From contig CBFFRP010000617.1 in NCBI GenBank assembly GCA_965644295.1, forward strand, positions 1-30,116: a stretch of 30,116 nucleotides of DNA, written 5' to 3'. Below, piece by piece: positions 1 to 28,600 of this stretch. The DNA is from Paraphysomonas bandaiensis. Lineage: Eukaryota > Protista > Chrysophyceae. Within the stretch, counting starts at the first letter, position 1. The number at the start of each line of letters is the position of its first letter. The notes beneath the pieces were generated by a model. That model was not told the DNA's origin. It worked only from the letters and a program-made list of their open reading frames with translations, and searched no databases. The translations under genes and the position numbers were made by a program.

Positions 1-293
1 TATTAGAATATGGACTGTATCCTAGTATATTCAATGTGGTACTTGAAGACAATGTACGAGAATACAGTGAAGTATGGTGATGTGTAGATGCTGTTATGAT
101 ATTGAGAAAACTGAAATAGTTTGCTCTTTCAAGATATGTTTAGTAGCGAAAGGTCTACAGAAGTAGTGATTTATGCATGGCACAAAACGAGCTTGTGTTG
201 TTTAACACAATTCGTGTAAACGATATTAATAAATCTATCTAGTCTAACAACTTAATCTCTCTTTGATCTAAGTAAAATGAGCATTTCCCAACA
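1..293 (+). repeat. 5' LTR of copia A (TATT...AACA)
   Basis: Matches 5164-5456 with no difference found by eye; followed directly by the PBS. Confidence 0.95.
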
Positions 294-1276
294 TGGTAGC
301 GAGCGAGGAGGGAGAGAAGGAGGATAGAGGAGTAGTTCCTCAGTTCAACGAGACTAACGTTGAACAATGGATTGAGGACTTCGAGACATTCCTTATGAGG
401 AAGGAACAAAGCGAGGTAGCGGTGGAACTGCCACCTAAGGAGAGCGACTTCGGGGAGCAGCCACTTACGTTGATGGAGGAGAAGGCGTACAGACAGGCTG
501 TGAAGAGGTATTGGAAGGCGAACGCCATAGCTTATTCTTACTGCAGGGATGCGGTGCAGCATTCCCCGAAAGCGCTGCGTAAATTCCATCTTACCCACAA
601 AGCGTTCAAGGCAGAAGGGAGTGGTGTAAACAGGTTCAAAACACATGTAATGATTGATGAGTTGAAGAAGTGTTTTGCTGGAGGGAAGCAAAATAGGATC
701 AGTGACCTCTTAACTCAATATGGTTCTTTCCGTATGCGTCCGGAGGAGACGGCGAAGGACTACGTACTACGGTTCGAACTACTGCTGAAGGAACTACAGG
801 AGCAGCAGCAGGATATCTCGGAGGTATCAAAAACAAGTCGACTACGAGAAGGCTTGCTCAATGAAGAGTATGCTCAACTGAGAGTTGGATTATACTTGAT
901 GGATGATGATGTTAATTATGTAACTGTATCACGTAAGATAGAAGGCTATGATGATACTATGGCTGGGAAGGAAGCGTTGGAGAAGAAGCGTAAAAGAGTG
1001 GAGGAGCTGAACCTGATAGACAGTAAGAAACGATATCGCAGAGAGAGGGATCATCGTAAGAAGAACAACGGTAAGAAGAAGCCGATGAAGAAGGATACAG
1101 AGATTACAGGGCAGCGACCTGGAAGTGCCGAATATACTGGGTGCAGAAATTGTAAGTCAAAGGAACATCTTGCCATCGATTGTCCAGCATCGAAAAAAGA
1201 AGTACTCGCAAAGCAAGAGCAAGGCTGTGAGGTTTCAAGATGGAAGGAAACCAGACAAAAGACTACTTACAGTTGA
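293..1276 (+). CDS. gag: Gag of copia A (true product probably continues into pol near 1191-1200)
   Basis: VPQFNETNVEQWIEDFETFL N-terminus, MRPEETAKDYVLRFELL copia gag motif, CCHC zinc knuckle CRNCKSKEHLAIDC. Confidence 0.9.
   Translation: MVASEEGEKEDRGVVPQFNETNVEQWIEDFETFLMRKEQSEVAVELPPKESDFGEQPLTLMEEKAYRQAVKRYWKANAIAYSYCRDAVQHSPKALRKFHLTHKAFKAEGSGVNRFKTHVMIDELKKCFAGGKQNRISDLLTQYGSFRMRPEETAKDYVLRFELLLKELQEQQQDISEVSKTSRLREGLLNEEYAQLRVGLYLMDDDVNYVTVSRKIEGYDDTMAGKEALEKKRKRVEELNLIDSKKRYRRERDHRKKNNGKKKPMKKDTEITGQRPGSAEYTGCRNCKSKEHLAIDCPASKKEVLAKQEQGCEVSRWKETRQKTTYS
294..304 (+). promoter_or_regulatory. Primer-binding site, probably for initiator tRNA-Met
   Basis: TGGTAGCGAGC is complementary to a tRNA 3' end GCUCGCUACCA, with the U72-A73-CCA pattern of iMet tRNA. 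The same TGGTAGCGA occurs at 25623 (+) and at 16906 (-). Confidence 0.8.
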
Positions 1277-4200
1277 AAACATCAGGCGTGGAGAGCCAGC
1301 GGATTTGTCTGACGAAGACGAAGCAAATATGATCGAGCAACAGGAAGAGTATCACTTGTCATGTAATGTGTATGAGACGAATATATGCAGTAGTGTGCAT
1401 GAGGATATTCACTATACATACATTGATACCTGTTGTTCGTCATCAATGTTTTTGATAAATGATGTGAATATACTTGATAGTCATATGCACACATCAAAGG
1501 TTATTAATGGTTCGAAAAAAGGGTCAGAGATATGCGTCACGAGTGTAGGTTCCCGTGGAGCATGGAAGAACATTGAGGTATCAAGTCAGATAAATCGGTG
1601 TCTTTGTTCTGGACGGAAGTTGAACGATATGGGATATCGATTTACTGTATGGTATGGTATACAGATATATGACAGAAATACGGATGAGCTGGTGTTGGAG
1701 GGACCTATGAAGAATGGAATGACTGCTGTGCCAACACAGCAGTTATTGGAGCTTCCAGACGTATCGACATCCAGTGATTCAGAAGTAAATCTCAGTGACC
1801 GTACGGGTGAGGATGAACTGGAGCTGTTACATAGGAGAGCGGGTCATTTTAACAAGCATGCGTTGGTAGAAGCCCACAAAAGAATGCTAATTATTGGGAC
1901 TGGACTGAAACGAAAACATCTCTCGAAACGTGTTTCCAAAGAACAGTGTCTATGTGATGTATGCGCCAGGGCGAAGATCACCAGAGTAAGTTTTCGGACA
2001 AAGGATGAGGACTCCGTTCGTCCAAATTTCTCGGCCGATATAGCAGTATACTTAAATTGTCCAGCTCGAGGAGGGGAAATATATGTGCTCAAACTAACAC
2101 ACCATGCCAGTCGGATGTTCTGGTCGGAAGGGCTTGTTCATAGGACTGGGTCATCGGTACTGCAGGTTTTCAAGAAGATTTTTGAAGGAGATGTGAAAAG
2201 GTACAAATTAGAAATGCATCATTACCATGCAGATGGAGCAGGGGAGCTAATATGTGATGAGCTGCGACAATATCTTAGGTCACAGGGTTGCTATCAACAT
2301 ACGTGGAGCTCTACGGACTCTCCTGAGATGAACGCGATTGAGGAGCGGAAATTCAGGACCTGTGGTGAGATGACATTAGCGATGCTGATTCAGTCAGGAT
2401 TGCCTTCACAGTTTTGGCTAGATGCCTACATGGCAGCCAGGTACATATTAATTCGATTGCCTACAAAGACAGCGAAGGGGTATATGTCCCCTCTTGAATT
2501 TTTGACTGGTGAGGCTCCCAACCTGAAATATCTCAGAGTATGGGGGTGTCGTGCGTATGTCATCACTACAAAGGCGGATCGACGGAAAGACTGGGACGAC
2601 AAGGCCCTTATCGGATATCTGATAGGATATTCAGATGAAAAGGTAGGATATGATGTATATCTACCTGCGACTGATAGGGTCGTCACGTCGGTACATGTAT
2701 TAACTGATGAGTCCATACCGTCACGCTCGGAGAGCTATTTCGCTGAGATAGATGCTCTTCGAGTGAAGGAGGCCGAGAGACCGAAAATTGTGTCTGACTA
2801 TGCGGGCTTAGAAGGTACATATCATATTGATGATGAGGATGGTCTTCTCTACAAGACCACGAGAGTAGTAGAACGAAAGGGGGTAATAGTAGCCTATCGA
2901 TCTCTGGTAACTGCAGGTCGGAAGCATATCGAGCACCGGGTGCCGATTCACGTCGAGGACGTAGTGCGAATGACTGCAGAAACTCCCGGGAATACCGGAT
3001 ATATCGGAAAGGGGGACGCCCTGAGTACTATGCCAGCCAGGGTGCTGGACCAGGGAAGACCTGGAGGGTTACAGGAGAGTCCTGACCCAACCTGTCAGGA
3101 GACAGCTGTGAGGTTGCAGACCTCTGAAGACTATGAGTCTGGGGTTGTGAGCGGGGCTCCTCCCACAACGCACGATGTGCGTGCTCAGGATGAGCAAGGT
3201 ACGGGTTCTTATATACCTCGTCGACCGATTGAACTAGATGGTGATGGTCGGGTCCGACGCAAACGGCTGCAGCGGAGACTGGCAAACGCGTCAGTTTTAG
3301 GAGAGATTAATATGGTTGAAGTACCGGATGCGCATAATATTGATCTTAACCATGCAGAGACAGAAGATATCAAGATACCAAATTCATATGCCGAGGCAGA
3401 GAGATCTCCACAGTATCAACAATGGAGAAAAGCTCGAATGGTGGAGAAGACATCATTGCTGAAAAGACGTGTCTTGAAGATCGTGAAAATTCCAAGCGGA
3501 GTGAAATTAGTTAGAGCGAAATATGTGCATACGGTGAAGCGAGACATACTAGGGAATATAGTAAAGTACAAGGCTCGGCTAGTGGCATTAGGAAATCTCC
3601 AAGAGAAGAAGGAGGAGGAGCCGTCCACTTTCGCTCCAGTGGTTAAGGGTATAACCATTAGACTAGTGTTAGCGATTGCGTTTATGTTACAGATGCATGT
3701 GCATCAATTAGATGTATCATCCGCATTTTGCTATGCAGATCTGGAGGATGACGTGTATATGGCACCTCCACCAGATGAGGAATTACTAGCTGGATGGTGT
3801 TTTCAACTAATCAAGGCATTGTATGGACTGCGATCTTCACCGCGACAGTGGAATAAACATATTGACAAGTTTATTAAATCATTGCATTTTACTCCGTGTA
3901 TTTTGGATACGTGTTTGTATATGCGATGGAGTAACGGAAAACTGCATTTATTATTGATATATGTTGATGATATCATAATTGCATCCGCTGATCTGACTTA
4001 CTTGGAAAGCGTAAAGCGTAGGTTCTGTGAAACATTCGAGATGCATGATCTGGGAGTGTGTAAGCGATTTCTGAACATCAGGATAACCAGAGGAGAAAAT
4101 TGGTATATGTTAGATCAATCTGAGTATGCTAAGAATATTATCAAGAAATTCAGCTCAGTTATGGGAAAGAGTAGTAAGAATAAGGAGGCCCCACTACCTA

Positions 4201-4990
4201 CTAATGTTCAGGATCTGTTGGCAGAGGAACGTGAACTTACGGAGGAGCAGAAGCAGTGGGTTGACTCATTTCCGTATCGGCAAATTATTGGAGCAGTGTT
4301 GTATCTAGCAATGCATACTAGACCTGATCTGGCTTATGCAGTGGGGTTATTGTCTCGATTTAGTAGTTGTCCGACATATGCATCGTGCAAACTGGCGATT
4401 CACTTATTGAAATATTTGCGTGGAACAATTGATGAGGGCATCAGATTCAGTGGGAGTGAGTTCGACTTACATGTGTTCAGTGATTCAGATTGGGCTGGTG
4501 ATAGACTGACTCGGCGATCGACAACAGGATACATTGTGTTCTTATGTGCAGGCGCATTGGCCTGGCAGTCTAAACTACAGACCACAGTTGCAACTTCGAG
4601 CATGGAATCTGAATATATGGCGGAGTATGCGGCTATGCAAGAACTGGTGTGGCTTCGGGGGTGTTCAAGGAGCTCGGGCTCTTAGTTGCGAAGCCGACTC
4701 CATTCTTTATGGATAGCAAGAGTGCGAAAGATCTCTCCGAGAATCCTGTGTATCATAAGAGGTCGAAGCATATAGACATCAAGTATCACTGGGTGAGAGA
4801 GCATGTAAATGGAAAATTTCCTACGGCAAAGTTGATTCATGTGTCGACGGATGATATGGCGGCTGATATTTTCACGAAGGCATTGTCAACGAAACTTTTC
4901 AGTCGTCATGAGAAAACTATTACCGGGGTTAAGAGAAGTGTGTCAACCAGAGTTGAGGAGCAGCAGAAGAAGCGACCCCGAAGAGGTTAA
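1125..4990 (+). CDS. pol: Pol of copia A: protease, integrase, RT, RNase H (one frameshift at a G-run near 4657-4661)
   Basis: HHCC (LLHRRAGH...CDVC), integrase ADI / HADGAGE / NAIEER, YKARLVALG, QLDVSSAF, LYGLRSSPRQW, YVDD, SDSDWAG, then KHIDIKYH and ADIFTK in ORF 4649-4990. Confidence 0.93.
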
Positions 4991-8128: not shown

Positions 8129-9166
8129 ATGTACCATGAGAGTCGTATTGATAAAGTATCCTCTGACATACATACATTTCACCACAACAGTGACGATAAC
8201 GAGCTATCAATATCTAGATATGAAATACTTATACCAATACATACACACAGTGCTAATATAGAGAGGGATGAGGATAGTATTACTGATAAATGTGTTAGAA
8301 AAAGACGTAAACGGTCCAGAAGTTCATGTTTTTTGACAATGTATCATCTTAGAAATACCCCAATATGGGATGTTGGCAAACAATTATGGAGAGGAGCGTT
8401 ATTACTAGCTGATTATATTATATATCAGAGAGAGCAATTGTGTCACAGGATTGTATTTGAACTTGGAGCAGGTATTGGACTATTAGGAAAAGTTGCTAGT
8501 TTGTTGCCGTGTAGGAGTGTGTATGTTACTGATGTGAACCAGTCTGTGGTCGACCTAATGATAAAGAACATGAACACAAACAGTCATGTATTACCTTTTC
8601 ACAATAATGCGACCATTGCACAGACTCATCCCAGGGTGCTGAACTGGTGTAATGAAAAGTCATGCAGAGATAGACTTGATCCCGCTGATAAATGGACGCC
8701 GCAAGACACTTCAGAATTGAACAATCACAATGTGCTATGGCTTGCTGCAGATGTCATATACGACGACCAGCTGACAGATGCATTCTTTGCAACGCTAACG
8801 CGGTTTATGAACCCAGGTGAGCACTTATGGTTGGCCTTAGAAAAGAGATTCAACTTTACAGTGGAAGAAATGTCCCTTGTCGCTCATGGCTACAGACGTT
8901 TCTTGTCATATATTGGAGAAAATATATCTGCTAGCAGTGTAGCACCTCTAGAATCAGATATTGATGAAAGAACTGACAAGGATAATACTTCCCATACTCC
9001 GCAGTGTGGTAGTATGACCAGCGTAGATGAGTCATCGAATAACGAATCTTCGCCAACCGTGAGCTTCAAAGGGCACAGGATTCCGATGAATTTTCCACAG
9101 TACGTATTAGATTATGATCGCGTGAAAGACCTTGAGCTGTGGGATATTGTACTACTAAACAAATAA
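8129..9166 (+). CDS. METTL22: METTL22-like class I SAM-dependent protein lysine methyltransferase (Methyltransf_16 family)
   Basis: VGKQLWRGALLLADYI, FELGAGIGL (motif I), VTD, LAADVIYDDQLTDAFF and EKRFNFT, motifs typical of METTL22. Confidence 0.85.
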   Translation: MYHESRIDKVSSDIHTFHHNSDDNELSISRYEILIPIHTHSANIERDEDSITDKCVRKRRKRSRSSCFLTMYHLRNTPIWDVGKQLWRGALLLADYIIYQREQLCHRIVFELGAGIGLLGKVASLLPCRSVYVTDVNQSVVDLMIKNMNTNSHVLPFHNNATIAQTHPRVLNWCNEKSCRDRLDPADKWTPQDTSELNNHNVLWLAADVIYDDQLTDAFFATLTRFMNPGEHLWLALEKRFNFTVEEMSLVAHGYRRFLSYIGENISASSVAPLESDIDERTDKDNTSHTPQCGSMTSVDESSNNESSPTVSFKGHRIPMNFPQYVLDYDRVKDLELWDIVLLNK

Positions 9167-12812: not shown

Positions 12813-13535
12813 ATGTATCAATCTGATGTGACATTCCCAAATGATTTCACGGGTTTGAGATCGGTGTTTGACGGTCAAGATATATTTGATACTCATATGA
12901 CGAAAACTTATTCCGCGGGCAGTGGTCCAACCGCATATGCAAACGGAGACTACAATTTGAAATGCTCTTCATATGGTAAGTACAGGACGGTAGATCCTTT
13001 AAATTCATGTAACTTATTATTTGATGATAGTGACGAGACTTTCTGGGGCAATAACAGAAATAACACGGGCCCGAATGGTATAGACAATTATAGAGACGGT
13101 GTTTTTTATGCGATGCCATCTGGTGAAGCTTATGATGGAACAACCGGCAATTATATAGGCAGTAGTGGAACAGATTATTACTTCTCAACAATGTATGATA
13201 CATCACACTCCATTGATGGAGAATGGGTGCAAATACAATTGCCTTTTAAGATGCGATTGACATTTATATCAACACAGGAAAGAAGCACACAACAGGAAAG
13301 AACAATGAAAGCTTGTTATATCCTTGGTTCCGATGATGGAACAACATGGAGTTATATAGATGACGTAGCATTTCCAGCAACTCAAGACTCAACTTTATAT
13401 ACTGAGCCGGTGACAACAACAAAGAGATATTCAATCATACGGATTGTAATCGCATCTGCCGGTTATATTATGTTTAATACGATCAACTTTAGATTGACAG
13501 GTGATACGTGGAGTCTTGAGTCGTCAACTGAATAA
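12813..13535 (+). CDS. Discoidin/F5-8 type C-like (galactose-binding fold) protein, virus-like
   Basis: GEWVQIQLP and YILGSDDGTTWSYI motifs; intronless, Y/G/T/N-rich. The real N-terminus may lie at 10460, before the Harbinger insertion. Confidence 0.7.
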   Translation: MYQSDVTFPNDFTGLRSVFDGQDIFDTHMTKTYSAGSGPTAYANGDYNLKCSSYGKYRTVDPLNSCNLLFDDSDETFWGNNRNNTGPNGIDNYRDGVFYAMPSGEAYDGTTGNYIGSSGTDYYFSTMYDTSHSIDGEWVQIQLPFKMRLTFISTQERSTQQERTMKACYILGSDDGTTWSYIDDVAFPATQDSTLYTEPVTTTKRYSIIRIVIASAGYIMFNTINFRLTGDTWSLESSTE

Positions 13536-16000: not shown

Positions 16001-16436
16001 TGTGCATATCGATTTTATCAATTTTGTCATTGAAAAGTCATGGTTTTTTCATTGAAAAGTAAGAAAAAGTGACTTTTTAATGAAAAAACCATGACTTTTC
16101 AATGAAATAAACGATGACCAAATCTATAAAATCGATATGCACAACCACCCCAATGTTTGGGTTTATTGAAGCGGTTTCTGAAAGATGTCCCTTTTTTTGC
16201 GCTTGGAAATCGATTTATTTCGGGAAAATAGGGGTTTTGAAGCTGAATACTGTCGGTTTTTGTGTCTTCTTTGCTTGATAGCTCAGAGCGTACCAACAGA
16301 CGAGCTTTAACCCACACAGCAGGTGGTTGTGCATATCGATTTTGTCATCGTTTATTTCATTGAAAAGCCATGTTTTTTTCATTAAAAAGTCACTTTTTCT
16401 CACTTTTCAATGAAAAAACCATGACTTTTCAATGAA
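16001..16436. repeat. Nested foldback/MITE-like inverted repeats
   Basis: 16001-16143 has 18-bp TIRs TGTGCATATCGATTTTAT and internal TCATTGAAAAGTCATGG palindromic arms. An inverted second copy lies at about 16322-16436. Confidence 0.8.
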
Positions 16437-16599
16437 TGAAACAATGACCAATTACGATCGTAATGCATGTTTTGTAATCATCAATAGGATGCAATTGATA
16501 TCAATAGACCTTAACGGACTCGTGATATCAAGTCTCAGTCACTTATCAACTGACCTTTGTTGATTTTTATCCTCTGGAACTGACCGAATCAGATCAGTG

Positions 16600-17637: not shown

Positions 17638-20600
17638 TTACACTAATACCATATCCTTGATCTGCTGCTTAGCAGCAGCATGTCCTTGATCTGCTGCCAG
17701 CCGATACCATCTCACGGCCTCAGCCTTGTCCACAGACACTCCTTCGCCATTAGCATAGCACACTCCAAGGTTAAACTGAGCAACAGCATTTCCTTGATCT
17801 GCTGCCAGCCGATACCATCTCACGGCCTCAGCCTTGTCCACAGACACTCCTCTGCCATTAGCATAGCACATTCCAAGGTTAAACTGAGCATCAGCATTTC
17901 CTTGATCTGCTGCCAGCCGATACCATCTCACGGCCTCAGCCTTGTCCACAGACACTCCTTCGCCATTAGCATAGCATATTCCAAGGATAAACTGAGCAAC
18001 AGCATCTCCTTGATCTGCTGCCAGCCGATACCATCTCACGGCCTCAGCCTTGTCCCCAGACACTCCTATGCCATTAGCATAGCACATTCCAAGGTTACGC
18101 TGAGCAACAGCATGTCCTTGATCTGCTGCCAGCCGATACCATCTCACGGCCTCAGCCTTGTCCACAGACACTCCTATGCCATCAGCATAGCACATTCCAA
18201 GGTTACAATGAGCATCAGCATGTCCTTGATCTGCTGCCAGCCGAAACCATCTCACGGCCTCAGCCTTGTCCACAGACACTCCTCTGCCATTAGCATAGCA
18301 CATTCCAAGGTTAAACTGAGCATCAGCATTTCCTTGATATGCTGCCAGCCGATACCATCTCACGGCCTCAGCCTTGTCCACAGACACTCCTTCGCCATTA
18401 GCATAGCATATTCCAAGGATAAACTGAGCAACAGCATCTCCTTGATCTGCTGCCAGCCGATACCATCTCACGGCCTCAGCCTTGTCCCCAGACACTCCTA
18501 TGCCATTAGCATAGCACACTCCAAGGTAAAACTGAGCAACAGCATGTCCTTGATCTGCTGCCAGCCGATACCATCTCACGGCCTCAGCCTTGTCCACAGA
18601 CACTCCTCTGCCATCAGCATAGCACACTCCAAGGTTACACTGAGCAACAGCATCTCCTTGATCTGCTGCCAGCCGATACCATCTCACGGCCTCAGCCTTG
18701 TCCCCAGACACTCCTATGCCATTAGCATAGCACACTCCAAGGTAAAACTGAGCAACAGCATTTCCTTGATCTGCTGCCAGCCGATACCATCTCACGGCCT
18801 CAGCCTTGTCCACAGGCACTCCTCTGCCATTAGCATAGCACACTCCAAGGTTACACTGAGCAGCAGCATCTCCTTGATCTGCTGCCAGCCGATACCATCT
18901 CACGGCCTCAGCCTTGTCCACAGACACTCCTTCGCCATTAGCATAGCACATTCCAAGGTTAAACTGAGCATCAGCATTTCCTTGATCTGCTGCCAGCCGA
19001 TACCATCTCACGGCCTCAGCCTTGTCCACAGACACTCCTTCGCCATTAGCATAGCATATTCCAAGGATAAACTGAGCAACAGCATCTCCTTGATCTGCTG
19101 CCAGCCGATACCATCTCACGGCCTCAGCCTTGTCCCCAGACACTCCTATGCCATTAGCATAGCACACTCCAAGGTAAAACTGAGCAACAGCATGTCCTTG
19201 ATCTGCTGCCAGCCGATACCATCTCACGGCCTCAGCCTTGTCCACAGACACTCCTATGCCATCAGCATAGCACATTCCAAGGTTACAATGAGCATCAGCA
19301 TGTCCTTGATCTGCTGCCAGCCGAAACCATCTCACGGCCTCAGCCTTGTCCACAGACACTCCTCTGCCATTAGCATAGCACATTCCAAGGTTAAACTGAG
19401 CATCAGCATTTCCTTGATATGCTGCCAGCCGATACCATCTCACGGCCTCAGCCTTGTCCACAGACACTCCTTCGCCATTAGCATAGCACACTCCAAGGTA
19501 AAACTGAGCAACAGCATCTCCTTGATATGCTGCCAGCCGAAACCATCTCACGGCCTCAGCCTTGTCCACAGACACTCCTTCGCCATTAGCATAGCACATT
19601 CCAAGGTTACGCTGAGCAACAGCATTTCCTTGATCTGCTGCCAGCCAATACCATCTCACGGCCTCAGCCTTGTCCACGGGCACTCCTCTGCCATTAGCAT
19701 AGCACACTCCAAGGTTAAACTGAGCAACAGCATCTCCTTGATCTGCTGCCAGCCGATACCATCTCACGGCCTCAGCCTTGTCCACGGGCACTCCTCTGCC
19801 ATTAGCATAGCACATTCCAAGGTTACACTGAGCAACAGCATGTCCTTGATCTGCTGCCAGCCGATACCATCTCACGGCCTCAGCCTTGTCCACAGACACT
19901 CCTTCGCCATTAGCATAGCACACTCCAAGGTAAAACTGAGCAACAGCATCTCCTTGATATGCTGCCAGCCGAAACCATCTCACGGCCTCAGCCTTGTCCA
20001 CAGACACTCCTTCGCCATTAGCATAGCACATTCCAAGGTTACGCTGAGCAACAGCATGTCCTTGATCTGCTGCCAGCCAATACCATCTCACGGCCTCAGC
20101 CTTGTCCACGGGCACTCCTCTGCCATTAGCATAGCACACTCCAAGGTTAAACTGAGCAACAGCATCTCCTTGATCTGCTGCCAGCCGATACCATCTCACG
20201 GCCTCAGCCTTGTCCACGGGCACTCCTCTGCCATTAGCATAGCATATTCCAAGGTAAAACTGAGCAACAGCATTTCCTTGATCTGCTGCCAGCCGATACC
20301 ATCTCACGGCCTCAGCCTTGTCCACGGGCACTCCTCTGCCATTAGCATAGCACACTCCGAGGTTACACTGAGCAACAGCATTTCCTTGATCTGCTGCCAG
20401 CCGATACCATCTCACGGCCTCAGCCTTGTCCACGGGCACTCCTCTGCCATTAGCATAGCACACTCCAAGGTAAAACTGAGCAACAGCATCTCCTTGATAT
20501 GCTGCCAGCCGAAACCATCTCACGGCCTCAGCCTTGTCCACAGACACTCCTTCGCCATTAGCATAGCACATTCCAAGGTTACGCTGAGCAACAGCATTTC

Positions 20601-23373
20601 CTTGATCTGCTGCCAGCCAATACCATCTCACGGCCTCAGCCTTGTCCACGGGCACTCCTCTGCCATTAGCATAGCACACTCCAAGGTTAAACTGAGCAAC
20701 AGCATCTCCTTGATCTGCTGCCAGCCGATACCATCTCACGGCCTCAGCCTTGTCCACGGGCACTCCTCTGCCATTAGCATAGCACATTCCAAGGTTACAC
20801 TGAGCAACAGCATGTCCTTGATCTGCTGCCAGCCGATACCATCTCACGGCCTCAGCCTTGTCCACAGACACTCCTTCGCCATTAGCATAGCATATTCCAA
20901 GGTAAAACTGAGCAACAGCATTTCCTTGATCTGCTGCCAGCCGATACCATCTCACGGCCTCAGCCTTGTCCACGGGCACTCCTCTGCCATTAGCATAGCA
21001 CACTCCGAGGTTACACTGAGCAACAGCATTTCCTTGATCTGCTGCCAGCCGATACCATCTCACGGCCTCAGCCTTGTCCACGGGCACTCCTCTGCCATTA
21101 GCATAGCACACTCCGAGGTTACAATGAGCAAGAGCATGTCCTTGATCTGCTGCCAGCCGAAACCATCTCACGGCCTCAGCCTTGTCCACAGACACTCCTC
21201 TGCCATTAGCATAGCACACTCCAAGGTTACACTGAGCATCAGCATGTCCTTGATATGCTGCCAGCCGATACCATCTCACGGCCTCAGCCTTGTCCACAGA
21301 CACTCCTTCGCCATTAGCATAGCACATTCCAAGGTTACACTGAGCAACAGCATTTCCTTGATCTGCTGCCAGCCGAAACCATCTCACGGCCTCAGTCTCG
21401 TTTTTAGCTAGACCAATACCTTCGCAATAAAAATACCCAAGTAGAAAGTGCTTATGAGCATATAAAGAAGGGTCACATAAAGCTTCCAGTCCTGGCAGAA
21501 TAGACTTTACCAAACCACGTGCTCTTTCGATATCTTTGGGAATGGTACATACACTACTCGCATTGAGTAATACAGCTAAATAGCCCTTAGCTAGCACATT
21601 ATCATGTTTAGCTACTGCTTTCAGTGCCTGCCACGCATGCACCTCTCCACATCGCGCCCGACAATATAATTCAAATGCTTGACTCGCAACAGCCACATTA
21701 GTGAAAGAATCATCAGATACAACTAGATTTGCACTAATAACAGCACTCACTGCTGACATGTCATCATCGTCGCCAGCGGCTCCTACGCCCCTCACATTCG
21801 CTAATATTTGTTTCACATCGGCAGCAAGATCGATCGTGTTTGGTCGTTCCCTAGGGTCCTGGTGGAGACAGCCGCTTTTACCGTCTTTATCTCCCACAAT
21901 CCTCATTAGAGAAGCAGCATGGATGTCCTCGCTCTGGGGCTCAAACAATTTAGGACGGAGACTTTTGAGGACCACATTTCTCACAATTACTCCGATTCCA
22001 CAATCTTTCCATGGAACATCCCGCGTCAGGATTTCGTTGACTGTAATGCCATATGCGTAGTTATCTGACCTGTCCGAATAGGGTGCACGACCTTCGCCAT
22101 CGTGGTCCAGCAGCTCTGGAGACATGTAAGCATTGCTTCCCACTGCCATGCCCATTGACGAGGAACTCGTAGAGTGGGATAGTGTGGCGGCAGTCGCCAG
22201 ACCGAAATCAGATATCTTAGCGGTGTAAGTGCGGCTATGAGTGTTCCAGACGAGCAGTATGTTCTGCGACTTGACGTCTCTGTGGGTAATTCTATGGTAG
22301 TGCAGATACAGCAACCCAGCAGCCACATCAGCACACACAGTCAATTGAGAGGCAAAGTGATCCAGACGGTCTCCGTTAGGCATGCACACATCTCGGTGCA
22401 GCAAGTCGTACAGAGAACAATGGGCCAGCTCCAGCACAATGATACCTTTCGACAACGAGGCGCCAAAGTAACCTATCACATTACAGTGCTGCACCAGCTT
22501 CATGATACGAGCTTCTCGGGAGAATTTGCGGGTTTCTTTTGCAGATGGCACTGCCTGTAGGGTAATGTGCTTGATAGCACTAGGGTTACCATTGTAGACA
22601 CCTTTGTATACCGTGCCATAGGCCCCTCTGCCAATGACATGCTCATCTATCTTCGACCACGCCAGCAGAGCAAGTTCTATATCTTCAAAGGTTACAGGGC
22701 GGCTATTAGAAGGTGGTGCTGGTGGTGGAGGAGGTGTATTGGGCGAAGTGCTCGTGTTACTGTTGTCACTGTCAGTGCTGACGTCTGCATCATCTACCGC
22801 CTGCTGGAGCGCGAGACTTGACGCGGCTGCTTGCTGTAAGGCTGCACGGATGTCAGTGGAGTCACGAGGGATTGGTAAGCCGATCGTAGCCACAAACTTC
22901 ATCACATCATCTCGTGTATCTCTATTATCGCGCAAGAGCTCCTGATGGGAGATGGTCTGAGCAATGGAAACTACAAAGAAGAAGAAAGGTAAGCAACATC
23001 ACACGATACAAAACCAAACTTGCAGGTTCGTCTTACCTTCTAGATGCAGATCAGCACACAGCTGGGTGATGCGCTGGTTGAGACTGTCAAACTCGAACCC
23101 TTTAAACATAGACGTCAACACCTTCCGTACATAAGTCTTTGATGTAAACTTCTGACAGTAATCAGCACAATCCTGCATGAGAAGGAGGAGTTTATGAAGG
23201 TTGGAGGTTGTTGTATCTTGGAACGATGGCATCTTTGCTAGTTGTCTAAGAAGGCCTTCAAAACTCATACACCGCTGGAGAATGTTATGACACTGAGCTT
23301 TCTGTCCTTCGATGTCATCATACAGTGCCTTTAATCCCGCTAATATGTCAAATAGAGTGGAGAGAATATCCAT
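17638..23373 (-). CDS. MLKL-like N-terminal helical domain + TKL protein kinase + Sel1-like repeat array; exons 23373-23037 and 22970-17638, about 1889 aa
   Basis: Exon 1 pattern (QKAQCHNILQRC...LHKLLLLMQDCADYCQKF...FDSLNQRITQLCADLHL) resembles MLKL_NTD/RPW8-type bundles. A 66-bp GTAAG...pyrimidine tract-TAG intron (23036-22971) joins in frame. Kinase motifs are GRGAYG, AIK, HRDVKSQN, DFG, YMSPE. Sel1 consensus is AQxNLGxCYANGxGV..DKAEAVRWYRLAADQG. Confidence 0.88.
17684..21400 (-). repeat. 34 near-identical 108-bp (36-aa) Sel1 coding repeats plus a partial, diverged first unit
   Basis: Phase anchors CCTTG at 17684 and 21356 are 3672 bp apart, which is 34 x 108. The frame is kept throughout. 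Confidence 0.95.
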
Positions 23374-23596: not shown

Positions 23597-24426
23597 TGTA
23601 TGTATGTATGTATGTATGTATGTATGTATGTATGTATGTATGTATGTATGTATGTATGTATGTATGTATGTATGTATGTATGTATGTATGTATGTATGTA
23701 TGTATGTATGTATGTATGTATGTATGTATGTATGTATGTATGTATGTATGTATGTATGTATGTATGTATGTATGTATGTATGTATGTAGGTATGTATGTA
23801 TGTAGGTATGTATGTATGTATGTATGTATGTATGTATGTATGTATGTATGTATGTATGTATCTATGTAGGTATGTATGTATGTATGTATGTATGTATGTA
23901 TGTATGTATGTATGTATGTATGTATGTATGTATGTATGTATGTATGTATGTATGTATGTATGTATGTATGTATGTATGTATGTATGTATGTATGTATGTA
24001 TGTATGTATGTAGGTATGTATGTATGTATGTATGTATGTATGTATGTATGTATGTATGTATGTATGTATGTATGTATGTATGTATGTATGTATGTATGTA
24101 TGTATGTATGTATGTATGTATGTATGTATGTATGTATGTATGTATGTATGTATGTATGTATGTATGTATGTATGTATGTATGTATGTATGTATGTATGTA
24201 TGTATGTATGTATGTATGTATGTATGTATGTATGTATGTATGTATGTATGTATGTATGTATGTATGTATGTATGTATGTATGTATGTATGTATGTATGTA
24301 TGTATGTATGTATGTATGTATGTATGTATGTATGTATGTATGTATGTATGTATGTATGTATGTATGTATGTATGTATGTATGTATGTATGTATGTATGTA
24401 TGTAGGTATGTATGTATGTACGTATG
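23597..24426. repeat. (TATG)n microsatellite, about 830 bp
   Basis: Nearly pure tetranucleotide array with a few TAGG/TATC/TACG variants. Confidence 0.99.
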
Positions 24427-25136
24427 TTCGCTGTAAATTTTTCTGATCGCCCCTTTCTGTACTTAATCGCATTGAATAGTTGATTCCTGGCTTTCTCAGC
24501 AATTAGTTTTTCGTAACAGTACTCACGGATAGCGTAAAAAACTTTCGAAGGACTTGATCCCGATTTCTCCAGAATATTCTTTCTCCAGTGTGGATTCCAC
24601 TGATTATTGACTTGTTTCTTTGTGTTTAAATACGTGGTTAGGACATGTTTTCCAAAGTATCTTAGTCGCAATTTCTCCTCGCTCAATTTGCTGTATTTAT
24701 TCCGGAAATCTTCAGTTGGCTGCTTTCCCGAATAGCTATCCACATATGTCTGAAAAAAACTTGGCCACTTCTGCTCAGGCAAATAAGCAAAAAAATTATC
24801 GCGCTCGTACGTCTTGGTGGGAACAGAAGTAATGGCATCAATCAATTTCACCGCTGCCTGGTTCCATAAAGAAGGGTTTCTGTCGTGATCTGATTCTACG
24901 CCGATATCGTCGCCAACAATGCTGCACAGGAAGGTGAAGCATACTTGTGCTAATCGCTTCTGTTTTGATGGAGTATTATCACTGGTTAAATACTTCAGCA
25001 TTTCTTCCATCTGGACGATAGCTGGTACATCCTTCAGTTCGAGACAGGATGTGACCTCGGCATCATCAGACGTGAGGGTGACGATTTCTTCGCTTTCTAC
25101 CTCTTCTTGTTCCAGATCATCGTTGAATTCACTCAT
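24427..25136 (-). pseudogene. Unknown protein (about 237 codons) running into the microsatellite; possibly TE-derived
   Basis: ATG-started, protein-like ORF with an acidic N-terminus and no stop before the TATG array. No family recognised. Confidence 0.5.
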
Positions 25137-25301: not shown

Positions 25302-25622
25302 TGTTGGAATACGTATGGTTCTCTAAGATAGTACTGTAGAATACGTTAAATACAATGTGAAAAACAGTAATACGTAGTCAATAGTCAAAAGGTGCTATAT
25401 AGCTATAACTGTGAAACTGAAGTATTATATCATGACGATTCAAGATACGGAAGTTGAGCAGTGGTTAACATGAACGAAATAATTTATCATGTTGTTGACA
25501 TGTGCTACATGACAACACACACAATTGTGTATACAATCATAATAAAGTAATCTATCTAGTTTGACTAACTTAAACTTCTCTTACAACGATCTTAATCATC
25601 TGAAAATGGTCTTTAGTCAATA
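25302..25622 (+). repeat. Putative 5' LTR of copia B
   Basis: Starts TGTTGGAATA, shares patches with LTR A (AATAAA..TCTATCTAGT), and ends right before the PBS. The partner LTR is outside the window. Confidence 0.7.
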
Positions 25623-28600
25623 TGGTAGCGAATGCGGAGGAGAGAAGGAGGATAGAGCTGATGTTCCATGGTTCGACGAGAGCAACGTTGAACAATGGAT
25701 CGAAGACTTTGAGACGTTCCTTATGAGAAAGGAGCAGAGTGAGGTGGCTCTAGAAAGGCCACCAGAGGAAGAGGATTTCGGAATTCAACCCCTGAATAGT
25801 CTTGAGACCAAGTCCTACAAAGAAGCGGTGGACAAGTATTGGAAGGCGAATGCAATTGCCTACTCATACTGCAGAGAGGCGGTGAAGCGATCTCCGAAGG
25901 CGCTGCAGAAGTTTCATCTGAAGCACAAGGAGTTCAAGGCAGCTGAAGGAAGAGTTAATAAGTTCAGCGCCAGAGAGATGGTTAGCACTCTTAAATCGTG
26001 TTTTGAAGGGGGAACACAAAACAAGATTAGTGCTCTGCTTGCTCAGTTTGGATCATTCGAGATGAAGCCAGGGGAGACCGCGAAAGAGTATGTACTGCGT
26101 TTTGAGCTGCTTCTTCGTGAACTTCAGGCGCATAACCAAACGGTAACGGAAGAATCAAAAATTAGTAGGCTGAAGGAGGGAATTATCAGTGATGAATATG
26201 ACGGTTTGAATTATGCCCTGTATTTAATGCCCGATGATGTACCATATGAATTGCTATCCAAACGTATCGAACAGTTCGACGACACCAAGTATGGGAGGAA
26301 AATCATAGAGAAGAAGCGCAAGAGCACGGAGGAGCTGAATCATATTGAAAAGCCTCGAAAGAAAGAGAGAGTATCTACAAAGAGGAAGTGCACTTATTGC
26401 TCGAAGAAAGGTATAATACACAATCATAATACAGAACAATGTAGGAAGAAAAAGGGGGAAACGAAGGGACAAAGACCGGGCAGTAAGGAATATACAGGAT
26501 GCAGAGTATGCAAATCCAAAAACCATCGCGCGAACGAATGTCCCCGAAATTCGACTGGAAAGACCAAGAAACCCCAGAAATCTGGGAAGGTTTTCACATT
26601 CGAGAATATCCGCAGAGGAGGAACCGAGTCTGACTCGGAGTCCGAAGCGAATATGCTTTATGACTGTGCTGTTGATATATATGATAAAAGTGACACATGT
26701 TGTATGATTGGTACTGCTGAACACTATACATACATAGATACATGCTGTTCATCATCAATGTTCTTGATGAATGATGTGACCATGCTTGACACTCATATGA
26801 ATACATCAAAGGTGATAAACGGATCTAAGAAGGGATCAGAGATTCATATCACAAGTGTGGGTTCCCGTGGAGCATGGAGAGACATAGAAATTTCAGATCA
26901 GATCAATCGATGCCTGTGCTCCGGACGTAAGCTGAACGAAATGGGCTATCGATTCACGGTGTGGTATGGGATCCAAATTTATGACTGTAATACCGGTGAG
27001 CTGGTACTGGAGGGACCCATGAAAAATGGAATGACTGCAGTTCCAACTCAGCAGCTGTTGGAGCTTCCAGATGTGTCTACACCGAGTAATTGTGAAGTAA
27101 ATCTTAGCGATAGGACTGGTGAGGACGAGCTGGAACTGCTGCATAGGAGAATGGGCCATTTCAACAAAGGGGCTCTAACGGAGGCACATAGAAGGATGTT
27201 GTTCACTGGCTCAAATCTGCAGAGGAAGCACCTATCGAAGACTGCATTAAAAAAATCTTGTCTCTGTAGCATATGTGCCAGATCAAAGATTACGAGAGTT
27301 TCGTTTCACACAAAGGAGGATACGGATGTCAAGCCGGACATATCGGCTGATGTGCAAGTATTTCTGAATACTCCCGCTCGAGGTGATGAGCGCTACGTGA
27401 TCAAACTAACTCATCACCCGAGTAGGATGTTCTGGGTAAAAGGCGTAAACCAGCGTACTAAAGAAGAAGTGATTCAGTTTTTTAGAGAGGTGTTCGAAGG
27501 AGAGATTAGGCAATATAAGCTGAGAGTGGACCACTACCACGCTGATGGAGCTGGAGAACTCATAAATCAAGAACTTAGGAGCTATTTGAGATCACAAGGC
27601 TGAGCTATTTGAGATCACAAGGCTGCTACAAACATACTTGGTCTTCAACAGATAGTCCGGAAATGAATGCAGTAGAGGAGCGAAAATTCAGGACTGCATC
27701 AGAGATGGCGTTGGCGATGTTGTTGCAGTCAGGCCTACCGGTTCCATTCTGGTTAGACGCGTATCCATGCTGCTCGCACATGCACTGATCCAGACTCCCT
27801 ACAAGGACGGACAGAGGATACATGTCCCCATATGAGTATGTGCCTGGAATAAGCCACCCAGTTTGAAATATTTTAGAGTATGGGGGTGCAAAACTTATAT
27901 ATTGACACCTAAGGCGGATAGGCGAAAGGACTGGGACGATAAATCAAAGAATTGGATACCTAGTGGGATATTCGGAAGATAAAGTTGGATACCAGGTGTA
28001 TCTCCCAGCAACCGATAAGAATATTACGCAATCGACGCTCTCCGAGTACGAACAGCACCTAGACCAAAGACGGTGAATGATTATCAGCATCTCGTGAAGA
28101 CTTTTCACATAGACGATGAAGACAGGCTGTTGTACAAGACCACCAGAGTGGTAGAAGAAAGGGTGTCATTGTTGGTTATCAGTCACTTATATGCGGGAGA
28201 ATCCACATTGAGCAGAAGGTACCCATACATATAGAAGATGTTCAGGTAATGACAAAGGAATACGCCTGGATACACGGGATATCGGGAACGAGGGACGCCT
28301 CTAGTACCACTGATGGACGGAGTACGTCCACTATCCCAGAAGCCTGAGAGCCATCAGGAGCAGCTAGTTAACCATGGTATTATTCAGGGAGCACCTGATG
28401 AAGATATGACTCAAGGAGTACTTGATGAAGATGCAGCTCAGGGAGTACCTGAATATGCTGATACTATAAATTCTAACAGTACTAATACCCTACAGAGAGT
28501 ATCTAAAGGGATGCAGAGAAACGTAAGCGTTTACGGAGGAGGCTAGCTAATGCTTCAGTGTTAGGAGAAATTAACATGATAGAGGTAATGGATGCCGATG

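Follow-up and report, generated by a model that had tools for sequence, protein, structure and literature searches.

In fungi and brown algae, fast-evolving recognition genes are marked by concerted evolution of near-identical repeats with a hypervariable binding face. In the fungal HET-E, HET-D and NWD proteins (WD40 repeats) and in the TPR and ANK arrays of fungal NOD-like receptors (NLRs; NOD, nucleotide-binding oligomerisation domain), the units share at least 85% identity, evolve in concert and are shuffled, their few hypervariable positions lie on a concave binding face, and an N-terminal cell-death or signalling domain is fused to the array (Paoletti 2007; Dyrka et al. 2014, PMC4986451). 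Dyrka et al. 2014 took at least 85% identity over at least 100 residues as the criterion for highly internally conserved repeats, and the conserved repeats of the fungal NLRs in their study were WD, ANK and TPR only, with Sel1 not found (PMC4986451). The LRR-ROCO and NB-ARC-TPR receptors of Ectocarpus also combine near-identical modules, positively selected concave residues and a signalling domain (Zambounis et al. 2012, PMC3341825). Here we describe a gene of the chrysophyte Paraphysomonas bandaiensis that resembles both groups. It lies on the minus strand of contig CBFFRP010000617.1 (assembly GCA_965644295.1; 62.5 Mb, 669 contigs), and the whole of this contig, 30,116 nucleotides, is the window of our analysis. 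The gene encodes a predicted MLKL-type four-helix bundle, a protein kinase domain and 34 near-identical Sel1 repeats.

Compared with the fungal arrays, the repeat is Sel1, a protein kinase replaces the NACHT or NB-ARC NTPase, the gene is single and has no paralogues for exchange, and the host is a protist rather than a dikaryan fungus. The Ectocarpus receptors likewise come from a lineage that is neither animal nor plant. Their repeat type and signalling domains differ from those of our gene, and each of their repeats forms its own exon, with exon-based shuffling, whereas the 34 units described here lie in one exon. Paraphysomonas is a stramenopile, like Ectocarpus. The receptor design is thus already known; what is new here is the Sel1 repeat type and the domain build, an MLKL bundle plus a predicted active kinase instead of an NLR. 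No paper on hypervariable, highly conserved Sel1 arrays, or on a general Sel1 sensor module, was found in the searchable literature. We hold it quite likely that this array evolves in concert while amino-acid replacements are retained on its binding face. With somewhat less assurance, we consider it probable that the array is a ligand-sensing solenoid of this kind, with its concave-face replacements retained, mounted on a kinase and an executioner-type bundle.

Tandem Repeats Finder reported one array at 17671-21395: 34.5 copies of a 108-bp period, with 93% matches and 0% indels. Open frames cross the array on either strand, and that on the minus strand is unbroken for 5.3 kb. The minus strand, which the note does not specify, is the coding strand: its open reading frame (ORF) at 17638-22935 (1765 codons) matches Pkinase (PF00069, E 2.8e-38) and then Sel1 (PF08238) in 35 tandem matches, which over the array reach 1281.9 bits against a cut-off of 30.7 (E = 0). 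The units can be set in an exact 36-codon register at 17683-21354, from unit 1 (21354-21247) to unit 34 (17790-17683). Among the 108 nucleotide columns, 88 are invariant over all 34 units, and the 20 variable columns fall in 14 codons and at 13 residue positions. In the first helix (helix A) and the following loop, the residue alternatives are N/H/D at position 1, V/D/L/A at 3, Q/H at 5, C/F/R at 6, N/Y/I at 7, M/V/I at 10, N/D at 14, E/R/I at 16, S/P at 19 and V/G at 20. In the second half of the unit they are Y/F at 29, R/W at 30 and D/Y at 34. An earlier note on this DNA, made by reading the letters, had proposed a unit motif with these alternatives, and the aligned units contain all of them and none additional. 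It had also noticed two synonymous variants against about 13 variable residues, and the same count came from the alignment: the synonymous variants are Leu8 CTT/CTC (31 and 3 units) and Pro19 CCC/CCT (10 and 1 units). At least 23 nucleotide changes are needed to account for the variants, 21 of them nonsynonymous and 2 synonymous. Most of the variation, as the note had said, sits in the first helix and the following loop, with ten of the 13 positions and 20 of the 23 changes within nucleotides 1-60 of the unit (P = 0.0015). On average two units differ at 6.6 of 108 nucleotides (about 94% nucleotide identity), and amino-acid identity is 85.5% over 1224 residues, a value above the threshold of Dyrka et al. 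2014 for high internal conservation.

All but three of the alleles are present in at least three units. Since the alternative bases recur at fixed columns across units and there are no indels in 3.7 kb, random read errors are ruled out as their source, which was also the note's concern. A different kind of error would be mis-assembly or collapse of the 3.7-kb array, from which the unit number, the unit order or some of the variants could have arisen. The contig is short, at 30 kb, and both of its ends lie in a Copia element with at least 40 identical copies, which counts in favour of such an error. Nevertheless, we regard an assembly artefact as very unlikely: the 5.3-kb frame is intact, identical alternative bases keep appearing at one set of 20 columns, and the variable positions match those of 18 unrelated arrays described below, which would not be expected of assembly errors. 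Moreover, a wrong order of units would leave the ratio of nonsynonymous to synonymous changes and the positional results unchanged.

The near-identity of the units is not a general property of Sel1 arrays in this organism. Internal identity is just 42-44% in the genome's other Sel1 arrays (contigs C128, C134 and C236), whereas in the focal array the invariant columns include all but two synonymous sites. The edges of the array, a diverged 'unit 0' and a C-terminal cap, have diverged as expected. These observations bear out the concerted evolution that the note had inferred, and show that the near-identity is maintained by recent unit duplication, unequal recombination or gene conversion. Partial multi-unit blocks recur within the array (units 19-23 resemble 29-33, units 6-8 resemble 15-17, and units 7-8 resemble both 12-13 and 16-17), so the array has partly grown through segmental duplication. 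In addition, all four gametes are present at 67 of 171 site pairs, and the Hudson-Kaplan minimum number of recombination events (Rm) is at least 7 within 108 bp, indicating that variants have been recombined among units. The recombination is incomplete. Pro19 is found only alongside Arg16, the residues at positions 6, 7 and 10 are associated, and the distinct units number 25 out of 124,416 possible combinations. Two other sources of variation were considered and rejected. Targeted mutagenesis of the kind seen with diversity-generating retroelements does not fit, as the variable columns have no adenine bias or other single-base bias. Import from paralogous arrays lacks a donor: a DNA search of the assembly returned the focal array only, with no second copy and nothing similar.

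On the consensus unit, 25-29% of random non-stop mutations are synonymous (kappa 1-4). Under strict neutrality of the whole unit, two or fewer synonymous changes among 23 have a P value of 0.053-0.019, with a dN/dS ratio (omega) of 3.4-4.3, and the Nei-Gojobori method (NG86) gave a piN/piS of 2.8-3.0, with 2.4% of codon bootstraps at or below 1. The note had suggested per-site dN/dS over the 34 units as a check; for the unit as a whole, the ratio is above neutral (piN/piS about 3, P 0.02-0.05), but the whole-unit tests alone give only nominal support. Strict neutrality is too generous as a null, because the Sel1 consensus residues are constrained. When only the 21 non-consensus codons were left free the P value became 0.005, and with only 13 it became 1e-4.

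A sharper test requires a site class that is chosen without the focal array. Comparator arrays were obtained from a word-indexed protein search with the repeat region, whose matches had at most 66% identity. Of these arrays, 18 comprise 10 or more units in register, at an internal identity of 65-77%; none reaches the focal 85.5%. Their within-array entropy peaks at positions 3, 10, 13, 14, 6, 1, 16 and 7, and their profile correlates with that of the focal array (Spearman 0.66, P 1e-5). The a-priori class was drawn from other highly conserved Sel1 arrays, the focal array being excluded, and comprises the eight positions at which their within-array entropy is greatest (1, 3, 6, 7, 10, 13, 14 and 16). 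In the focal array this class holds 15 nonsynonymous and 0 synonymous changes. Measured against the whole-unit synonymous rate, omega is about 10 (P = 1.7e-4), and against the synonymous sites of codons 1-20 only it is about 5.5 (P = 0.007). The remaining 28 codons have 6 nonsynonymous and 2 synonymous changes and an omega of about 1.0. Replacements have thus probably been retained in excess at a small set of positions.

An 8-unit AlphaFold2 (AF2) model, for which the alignment consisted of sliding windows of the array, gave a mean predicted local distance difference test score (pLDDT) of 97.1. In the model, helix A spans residues 2-14, the A-B loop 15-21, helix B 22-34 and the inter-repeat turn 35-37. 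The model matched the solved Sel1-like repeat (SLR) proteins 6ok3, 8sxq (LceB) and 4bwr (c5321) with TM-scores for the query (TMq) of 0.86-0.95; for c5321/EsiB, the value was 0.86 at 39% identity. The array is therefore modelled as a right-handed superhelix of SLR-type units, helix (13)-loop (7)-helix (13)-loop (3), and the crystal structure of Escherichia coli c5321/EsiB has the same 13/7/13/3 layout (PMC3851747). On a helical wheel, residues 3, 6, 7, 10 and 14 lie within one 40-140 degree arc of helix A (entropy moment 0.70), and the rest of the wheel is made up of the invariant A2, A4, L8, G9, C11, Y12 and A13. The positions with an apparent excess of replacements are this helix-A stripe, the N-cap (1) and residues 16, 19 and 20 of the A-B loop. 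Mapping the variable sites onto a predicted solenoid, another check that the note had named, thus placed them on one exposed helix-A face plus the A-B loop, as judged from DSSP, the helical wheel and homology to c5321.

In c5321 the concave face is built from the first helix of each repeat and the convex face from the second, the concave face being less conserved. A peptide bound in the concave groove is, in both c5321 and HcpC, hydrogen-bonded by a conserved Asn (repeat position 6r), which is also how TPR proteins do it (PMC3851747). Position 6r corresponds to position 7 of the focal unit, where N, Y and I alternate. By homology to the solved Sel1 proteins, we infer that the variable stripe lines the concave superhelical groove where peptides bind.

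The note had called the variation a combinatorial code and likened it to that of TALE repeats, and the same could be said for PPR or PUF proteins: each Sel1 unit would read one element of a polymer, and the order of units would spell the target. Such a code would draw on discrete unit types, on a long and regular solenoid (about 35 units) and on variation at fixed positions, all of which the array has. We find this reading extremely improbable, and the note's analogy was not supported. A unit has 8-13 variable positions instead of two, the 25 unit types are partially linked (Pro19 with Arg16), and there is no sign that one unit corresponds to one monomer; we know of no such register for SLRs. 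The structural neighbours are all protein- or peptide-binding SLR or TPR proteins, and no nucleic-acid-binding features were seen. The geometry of SLR superhelices, with 7-8 units per turn and a pitch of 60-65 Å, also speaks against it (PMC3851747).

The positions that vary in the focal array are among those most variable in other Sel1 arrays. General tolerance alone does not account for the pattern: across 24 ordinary divergent arrays, variability on the helix-B surface (positions 22, 23, 26 and 27) equals that of the helix-A positions, yet the focal array varies at 8 of 10 tolerant positions of helix A and the loop and at 0 of 4 tolerant positions of helix B (Fisher P = 0.015). The focal variation is thus limited to the concave half. 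Two comparators, P0162 and P0135, allowed a comparison at the DNA level; among their units, which share 84-86% nucleotide identity, synonymous changes are numerous. The concave set has an omega of about 1.0-1.6 and the other positions one of 0.2-0.4 (Fisher P = 0.002 and 0.007), which shows that the constancy of helix B is held by purifying selection, given time for synonymous change. P0162 has a 14-unit array in which two units are identical and synonymous differences are many; its locus (L026, metagenome contig Ga0645781_11936) carries two adjacent Sel1-kinase genes with an IS110-family transposase gene between them. Since the transposase gene adjoins, this contig is probably bacterial. P0135 is a protein of 1815 residues with a highly conserved array of 19 units, encoded on metagenome contig Ga0392394_0010031 (L027). 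Its neighbour there is a Copia-type RVT_2 ORF, which points to a eukaryotic origin and to transposon-rich surroundings similar to those of the focal gene.

Several points weigh against selection on a binding groove. With only two synonymous changes, all dN/dS figures rest on small counts, and the whole-unit test is marginal. The changes were counted as alleles among recombining paralogous units and not on a tree, and searches of the own genome, the word-indexed search and phmmer found no alleles, orthologues or paralogues from which dN/dS could be obtained. Both synonymous changes lie in the variable half of the unit, and CCC is fully linked to the Ser-to-Pro replacement, so that the first half of the unit may conceivably be mutation-prone or older. 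The concave omega of about 1-1.6 in P0162 and P0135 also fits relaxed constraint. As to the groove, positions 29 (Y/F) and 30 (R/W) correspond to inter-repeat packing residues in c5321, and the LceB study located the conserved surface of that protein on its convex rather than its concave side, so that groove binding is typical among SLR proteins and not universal.

Some of these points are also what a neutral young array would produce, one that was amplified very recently, has collected near-neutral replacements at the least constrained surface positions and shows its nonsynonymous excess as a small-sample effect. The omega of about 1.0 outside the concave set agrees with such a history, as does the fact that the same positions are the most variable in ordinary divergent Sel1 arrays. 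We nevertheless judge it unlikely, on account of the 15 replacements without a synonymous change at the a-priori concave set and of the invariance of the tolerant helix-B positions. Radical exchanges are frequent among the replacements (E/R/I, C/F/R, D/Y, R/W), and at two codons the alternatives are two nucleotide steps apart (AGA/GAA and TCT/CCC). The note's proposal of diversifying selection on a binding surface is thus moderately to well supported: the a-priori set and its exposed stripe speak for it, and the weak point is the whole unit.

The comparator arrays also differ in the domains to which they are attached. Ten highly conserved arrays, a set that overlaps the 18 in-register arrays and is not identical to it, were scanned for partner domains, and the scan returned NB-ARC (P0181), nSTAND1 (P0224), caspase (P0187) and TIR_2 (P0143). 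Precomputed domain lists for other Sel1-array proteins contain CHAT, NACHT and trypsin-like domains. Long Sel1 arrays were seen on NB-ARC, nSTAND1, AAA_16, caspase, TIR and CHAT proteins, among them P0181, P0224, P0187, P0143, P0161, P0122, P0157 and P0167. These long conflict-type arrays are mostly bacterial or metagenomic, have an internal identity of 65-77% and vary at the same helix-A positions. They are like the focal array in having the same 36-residue unit (at most 66% identity) and the same hypervariable positions, and unlike it in being older, in their other partner domains and in their mostly prokaryotic appearance. Overall, the Sel1 arrays of conflict systems look like a class-level sensor module.

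N-terminal to the array, the gene model has two exons, which were analysed separately and not as a joined protein. Exon 1 (23037-23373, minus strand; 112 codons plus one base, with the ATG at 23373) encodes the MLKL_N-type, executioner-like four-helix-bundle domain. It is followed by a 66-nt intron (22971-23036) that was read from the sequence, with GT...AG ends, a polypyrimidine tract and phase 1. Exon 2 (17638-22970, minus strand) encodes a linker, the kinase, degenerate capping repeats, the 34-unit array, the C-terminal cap and the stop codon (17638-17640). The intron is predicted to join the MLKL_N exon to the kinase-Sel1 exon: the splice keeps the frame, with the final base G of exon 1 and the initial TT of exon 2, and the model is supported by the N-terminal location of MLKL_N matches in the nearest kinase relatives. 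The upstream ORF at 22999-23373 (minus strand) matches MLKL_N (PF22215) with 30.6 bits against a cut-off of 27 (E 2.7e-7), and language-model features of exon 1 score 0.95 to MLKL_N clusters. The AF2 model of exon 1 has a pLDDT of 80.7, and its top nine PDB matches are all MLKL executioner domains (TMq 0.69-0.80), at a sequence identity of only 13-17%. By these three computational lines (hidden Markov model, language model and fold), which are partly interdependent, the modelled exon 1 is an MLKL-type four-helix bundle.

The protein kinase domain covers ORF residues 98-367 (21835-22644, minus strand; PF00069 and PF07714). In the translation, the Gly-loop GRGAYG, the AIK Lys, HRDVKSQN, DFG and SPE are all kept, and the kinase is therefore predicted to be of the RD type and active. 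MLKL itself, the necroptosis executioner of animals with counterparts in plants, is a pseudokinase activated by RIPK3. The focal protein differs from it in retaining all catalytic motifs and in adding a C-terminal 35-unit Sel1 array, and its bundle is remote in sequence, as given above; the executioner bundle of the MLKL family is present and the dead pseudokinase is absent. Between the kinase and the array lies an N-terminal capping region of degenerate, Sel1/TPR-like repeats (21355-21699, minus strand), seen in the translation, which includes the diverged 'unit 0' (21355-21462) and is 31-37% identical to the ordinary Sel1 arrays on contigs C236, C184 and C128. The C-terminal cap (17641-17682, minus strand) comprises 14 residues of a truncated helix A in the translation (HAAAKQQIKDMVLV). 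On the plus strand, an open frame of 1243 codons at 17680-21411 has a periodic, low-complexity translation. It was rejected as a gene and is a stop-free by-product of the repeat; the Sel1 and kinase matches are on the minus strand.

The gene appears to be isolated in its genome. In protein searches of the assembly, identity did not exceed 51% for Sel1 arrays and 34% for kinases, and no second MLKL_N was found, so that no paralogue exists in the own genome for any of the three parts. In the word-indexed search nothing was closer than 33% (kinase) or 66% (Sel1). A phmmer search with the 527 pre-array residues against 1.84 billion representatives found no orthologue, with best kinase-domain matches of 35-45%; higher identities in that search are short matches to the degenerate Sel1 unit at the end of the query. 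Eleven short kinase relatives (494-764 residues) were examined, and the five that were looked up come from environmental assemblies. Ten of the eleven have an MLKL_N match at the N-terminus, three of them above the Pfam cut-off and seven sub-threshold at or near the N-terminus, and the N-termini of the relatives have 18-33% identity to exon 1. The nearest kinase relatives (P0243, P0257, P0276, P0259, P0289, P0265, P0303, P0305, P0262 and P0291; 35-44% identity, 492-764 residues), nearly all with an MLKL_N-like bundle at the N-terminus, look like an unannotated family of MLKL bundle plus kinase fold. The focal gene falls into this 'MLKL_N plus kinase' clade, with the Sel1 array as an addition in its own lineage.

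Kinases joined to Sel1 arrays are also found in fungi. In early-diverging fungi, 'MLKL family' homologues with Sel1 repeats have been described from Glomeromycotina as being 'with no clear function' (PMC8778642). Like the focal gene, the proteins of Glomeromycotina and those of Gonapodya and Actinomortierella join a protein kinase to a Sel1 array. Proteins of the Gonapodya/Actinomortierella type differ in that their precomputed Pfam lists, on which this comparison relies, contain no MLKL_N. Identity between the fungal proteins and the focal one is 45-54% over the Sel1 stretch, and one Actinomortierella protein reached 36% in the search with the N-terminal and kinase part. The papers searched contained no analysis of hypervariability in these fungal proteins.

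How such a protein would work can be proposed from its parts. Its 35 units would form about 4.5 superhelical turns of patchwork binding surface. The reshuffling of unit types, together with expansion and contraction of the array, might generate new binding specificities quickly, as in fungal HET-E/NWD and in NLR TPR and ANK arrays. A ligand bound to the solenoid could relieve autoinhibition or drive oligomerisation. The kinase would then be activated and the N-terminal bundle released, leading to membrane damage or signalling, and the protein would act as a NOD-less sensor of non-self or biotic stress. No NACHT or NB-ARC (NOD/STAND NTPase) was found in the protein, in which Pfam gives only MLKL_N, Pkinase and Sel1. 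The analogy to the WD40 repeats of HET-E, also drawn in the note, accordingly holds for the evolutionary regime and fails for the NOD/STAND domain and for exchange among paralogues. A non-self or immune function, inferred from architecture and analogy, is in our view a tentative possibility to which we give a little less than even weight.

An everyday role should be considered as well. The array could be an adaptor platform of an ordinary kinase, a non-immune signalling scaffold in which variation tunes self-assembly or the choice of partner. Early-diverging fungi and bacteria commonly have kinase-Sel1 proteins that lack a death domain, and Sel1 proteins such as SEL1L/Hrd3 act as scaffolds. 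We think such a scaffold improbable, more so than the neutral history discussed above. The MLKL-type executioner bundle is conserved in the closest relatives, and NB-ARC, nSTAND1, caspase and TIR proteins carry similar Sel1 arrays. Furthermore, the combination of high internal conservation and a hypervariable face is, in other proteins, strongly over-represented among receptors of the NLR type (PMC4986451).

A wider proposal combines these elements, and we put it forward as a speculation that we rather doubt in its full form. The protein would be a NOD-less, single-chain immune or non-self receptor of a bacterivorous protist, whose groove of about 35 Sel1 units reads ligands derived from prey, viruses or conspecifics and gates a kinase and a membrane-attacking bundle. 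Sel1 arrays with the same helix-A stripe would then be an unrecognised fifth class of fast-diversifying sensors after LRR, WD40, ANK and TPR, common to eukaryotic MLKL-like kinases and to bacterial NB-ARC, nSTAND, caspase and TIR conflict proteins.

Several consequences follow for the study of recognition genes. With the Sel1 case, the principle of near-identical repeats with a variable face covers a repeat fold, a signalling chassis and a lineage (a free-living protist) that are all new to it. The recurrence of the same stripe in bacterial NB-ARC, nSTAND1, caspase and TIR fusions points to a general Sel1 sensor module in conflict systems. The array also suggests that MLKL-type executioner domains are linked to direct ligand sensing beyond animals and plants, which can be tested. 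Finally, a fixed framework with about eight variable positions is a natural template for the design of Sel1-based binders; the principle of near-identical repeats with a hypervariable face also underlies the engineered DARPin and consensus-TPR binders.

The surroundings of the gene are rich in repeats. An 830-bp microsatellite, (TGTA)208 with 98% matches, lies at 23597-24427, about 220 bp upstream of the ATG at 23373. It is unusually long for a promoter region, and changes in its length might alter expression. About 1.2 kb downstream of the stop codon, at 16070-16448, there are three short arrays of a 22-bp AT-rich tandem repeat.

A Copia-type long terminal repeat (LTR) retrotransposon lies at 293-4685, with gag (zinc knuckle) at 293-1276 and pol (RVT_2 and integrase) at 1125-4685, and a second gag/pre-integrase ORF is found at 25561-27603. 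Other contigs carry at least 40 copies of a 3-kb stretch of pol, all at 100% identity (292 candidates), and the focal contig therefore belongs to the genome of this assembly. Several contigs begin at the same offset within the Copia pol. The identical copies and the common starting offset indicate that a very recent Copia burst breaks the assembly. Two further ORFs in the window are intronless: one at 8129-9166 encodes a lysine methyltransferase (Methyltransf_16), and one at 12813-13535 encodes a protein with a discoidin (F5/8 type C) domain.

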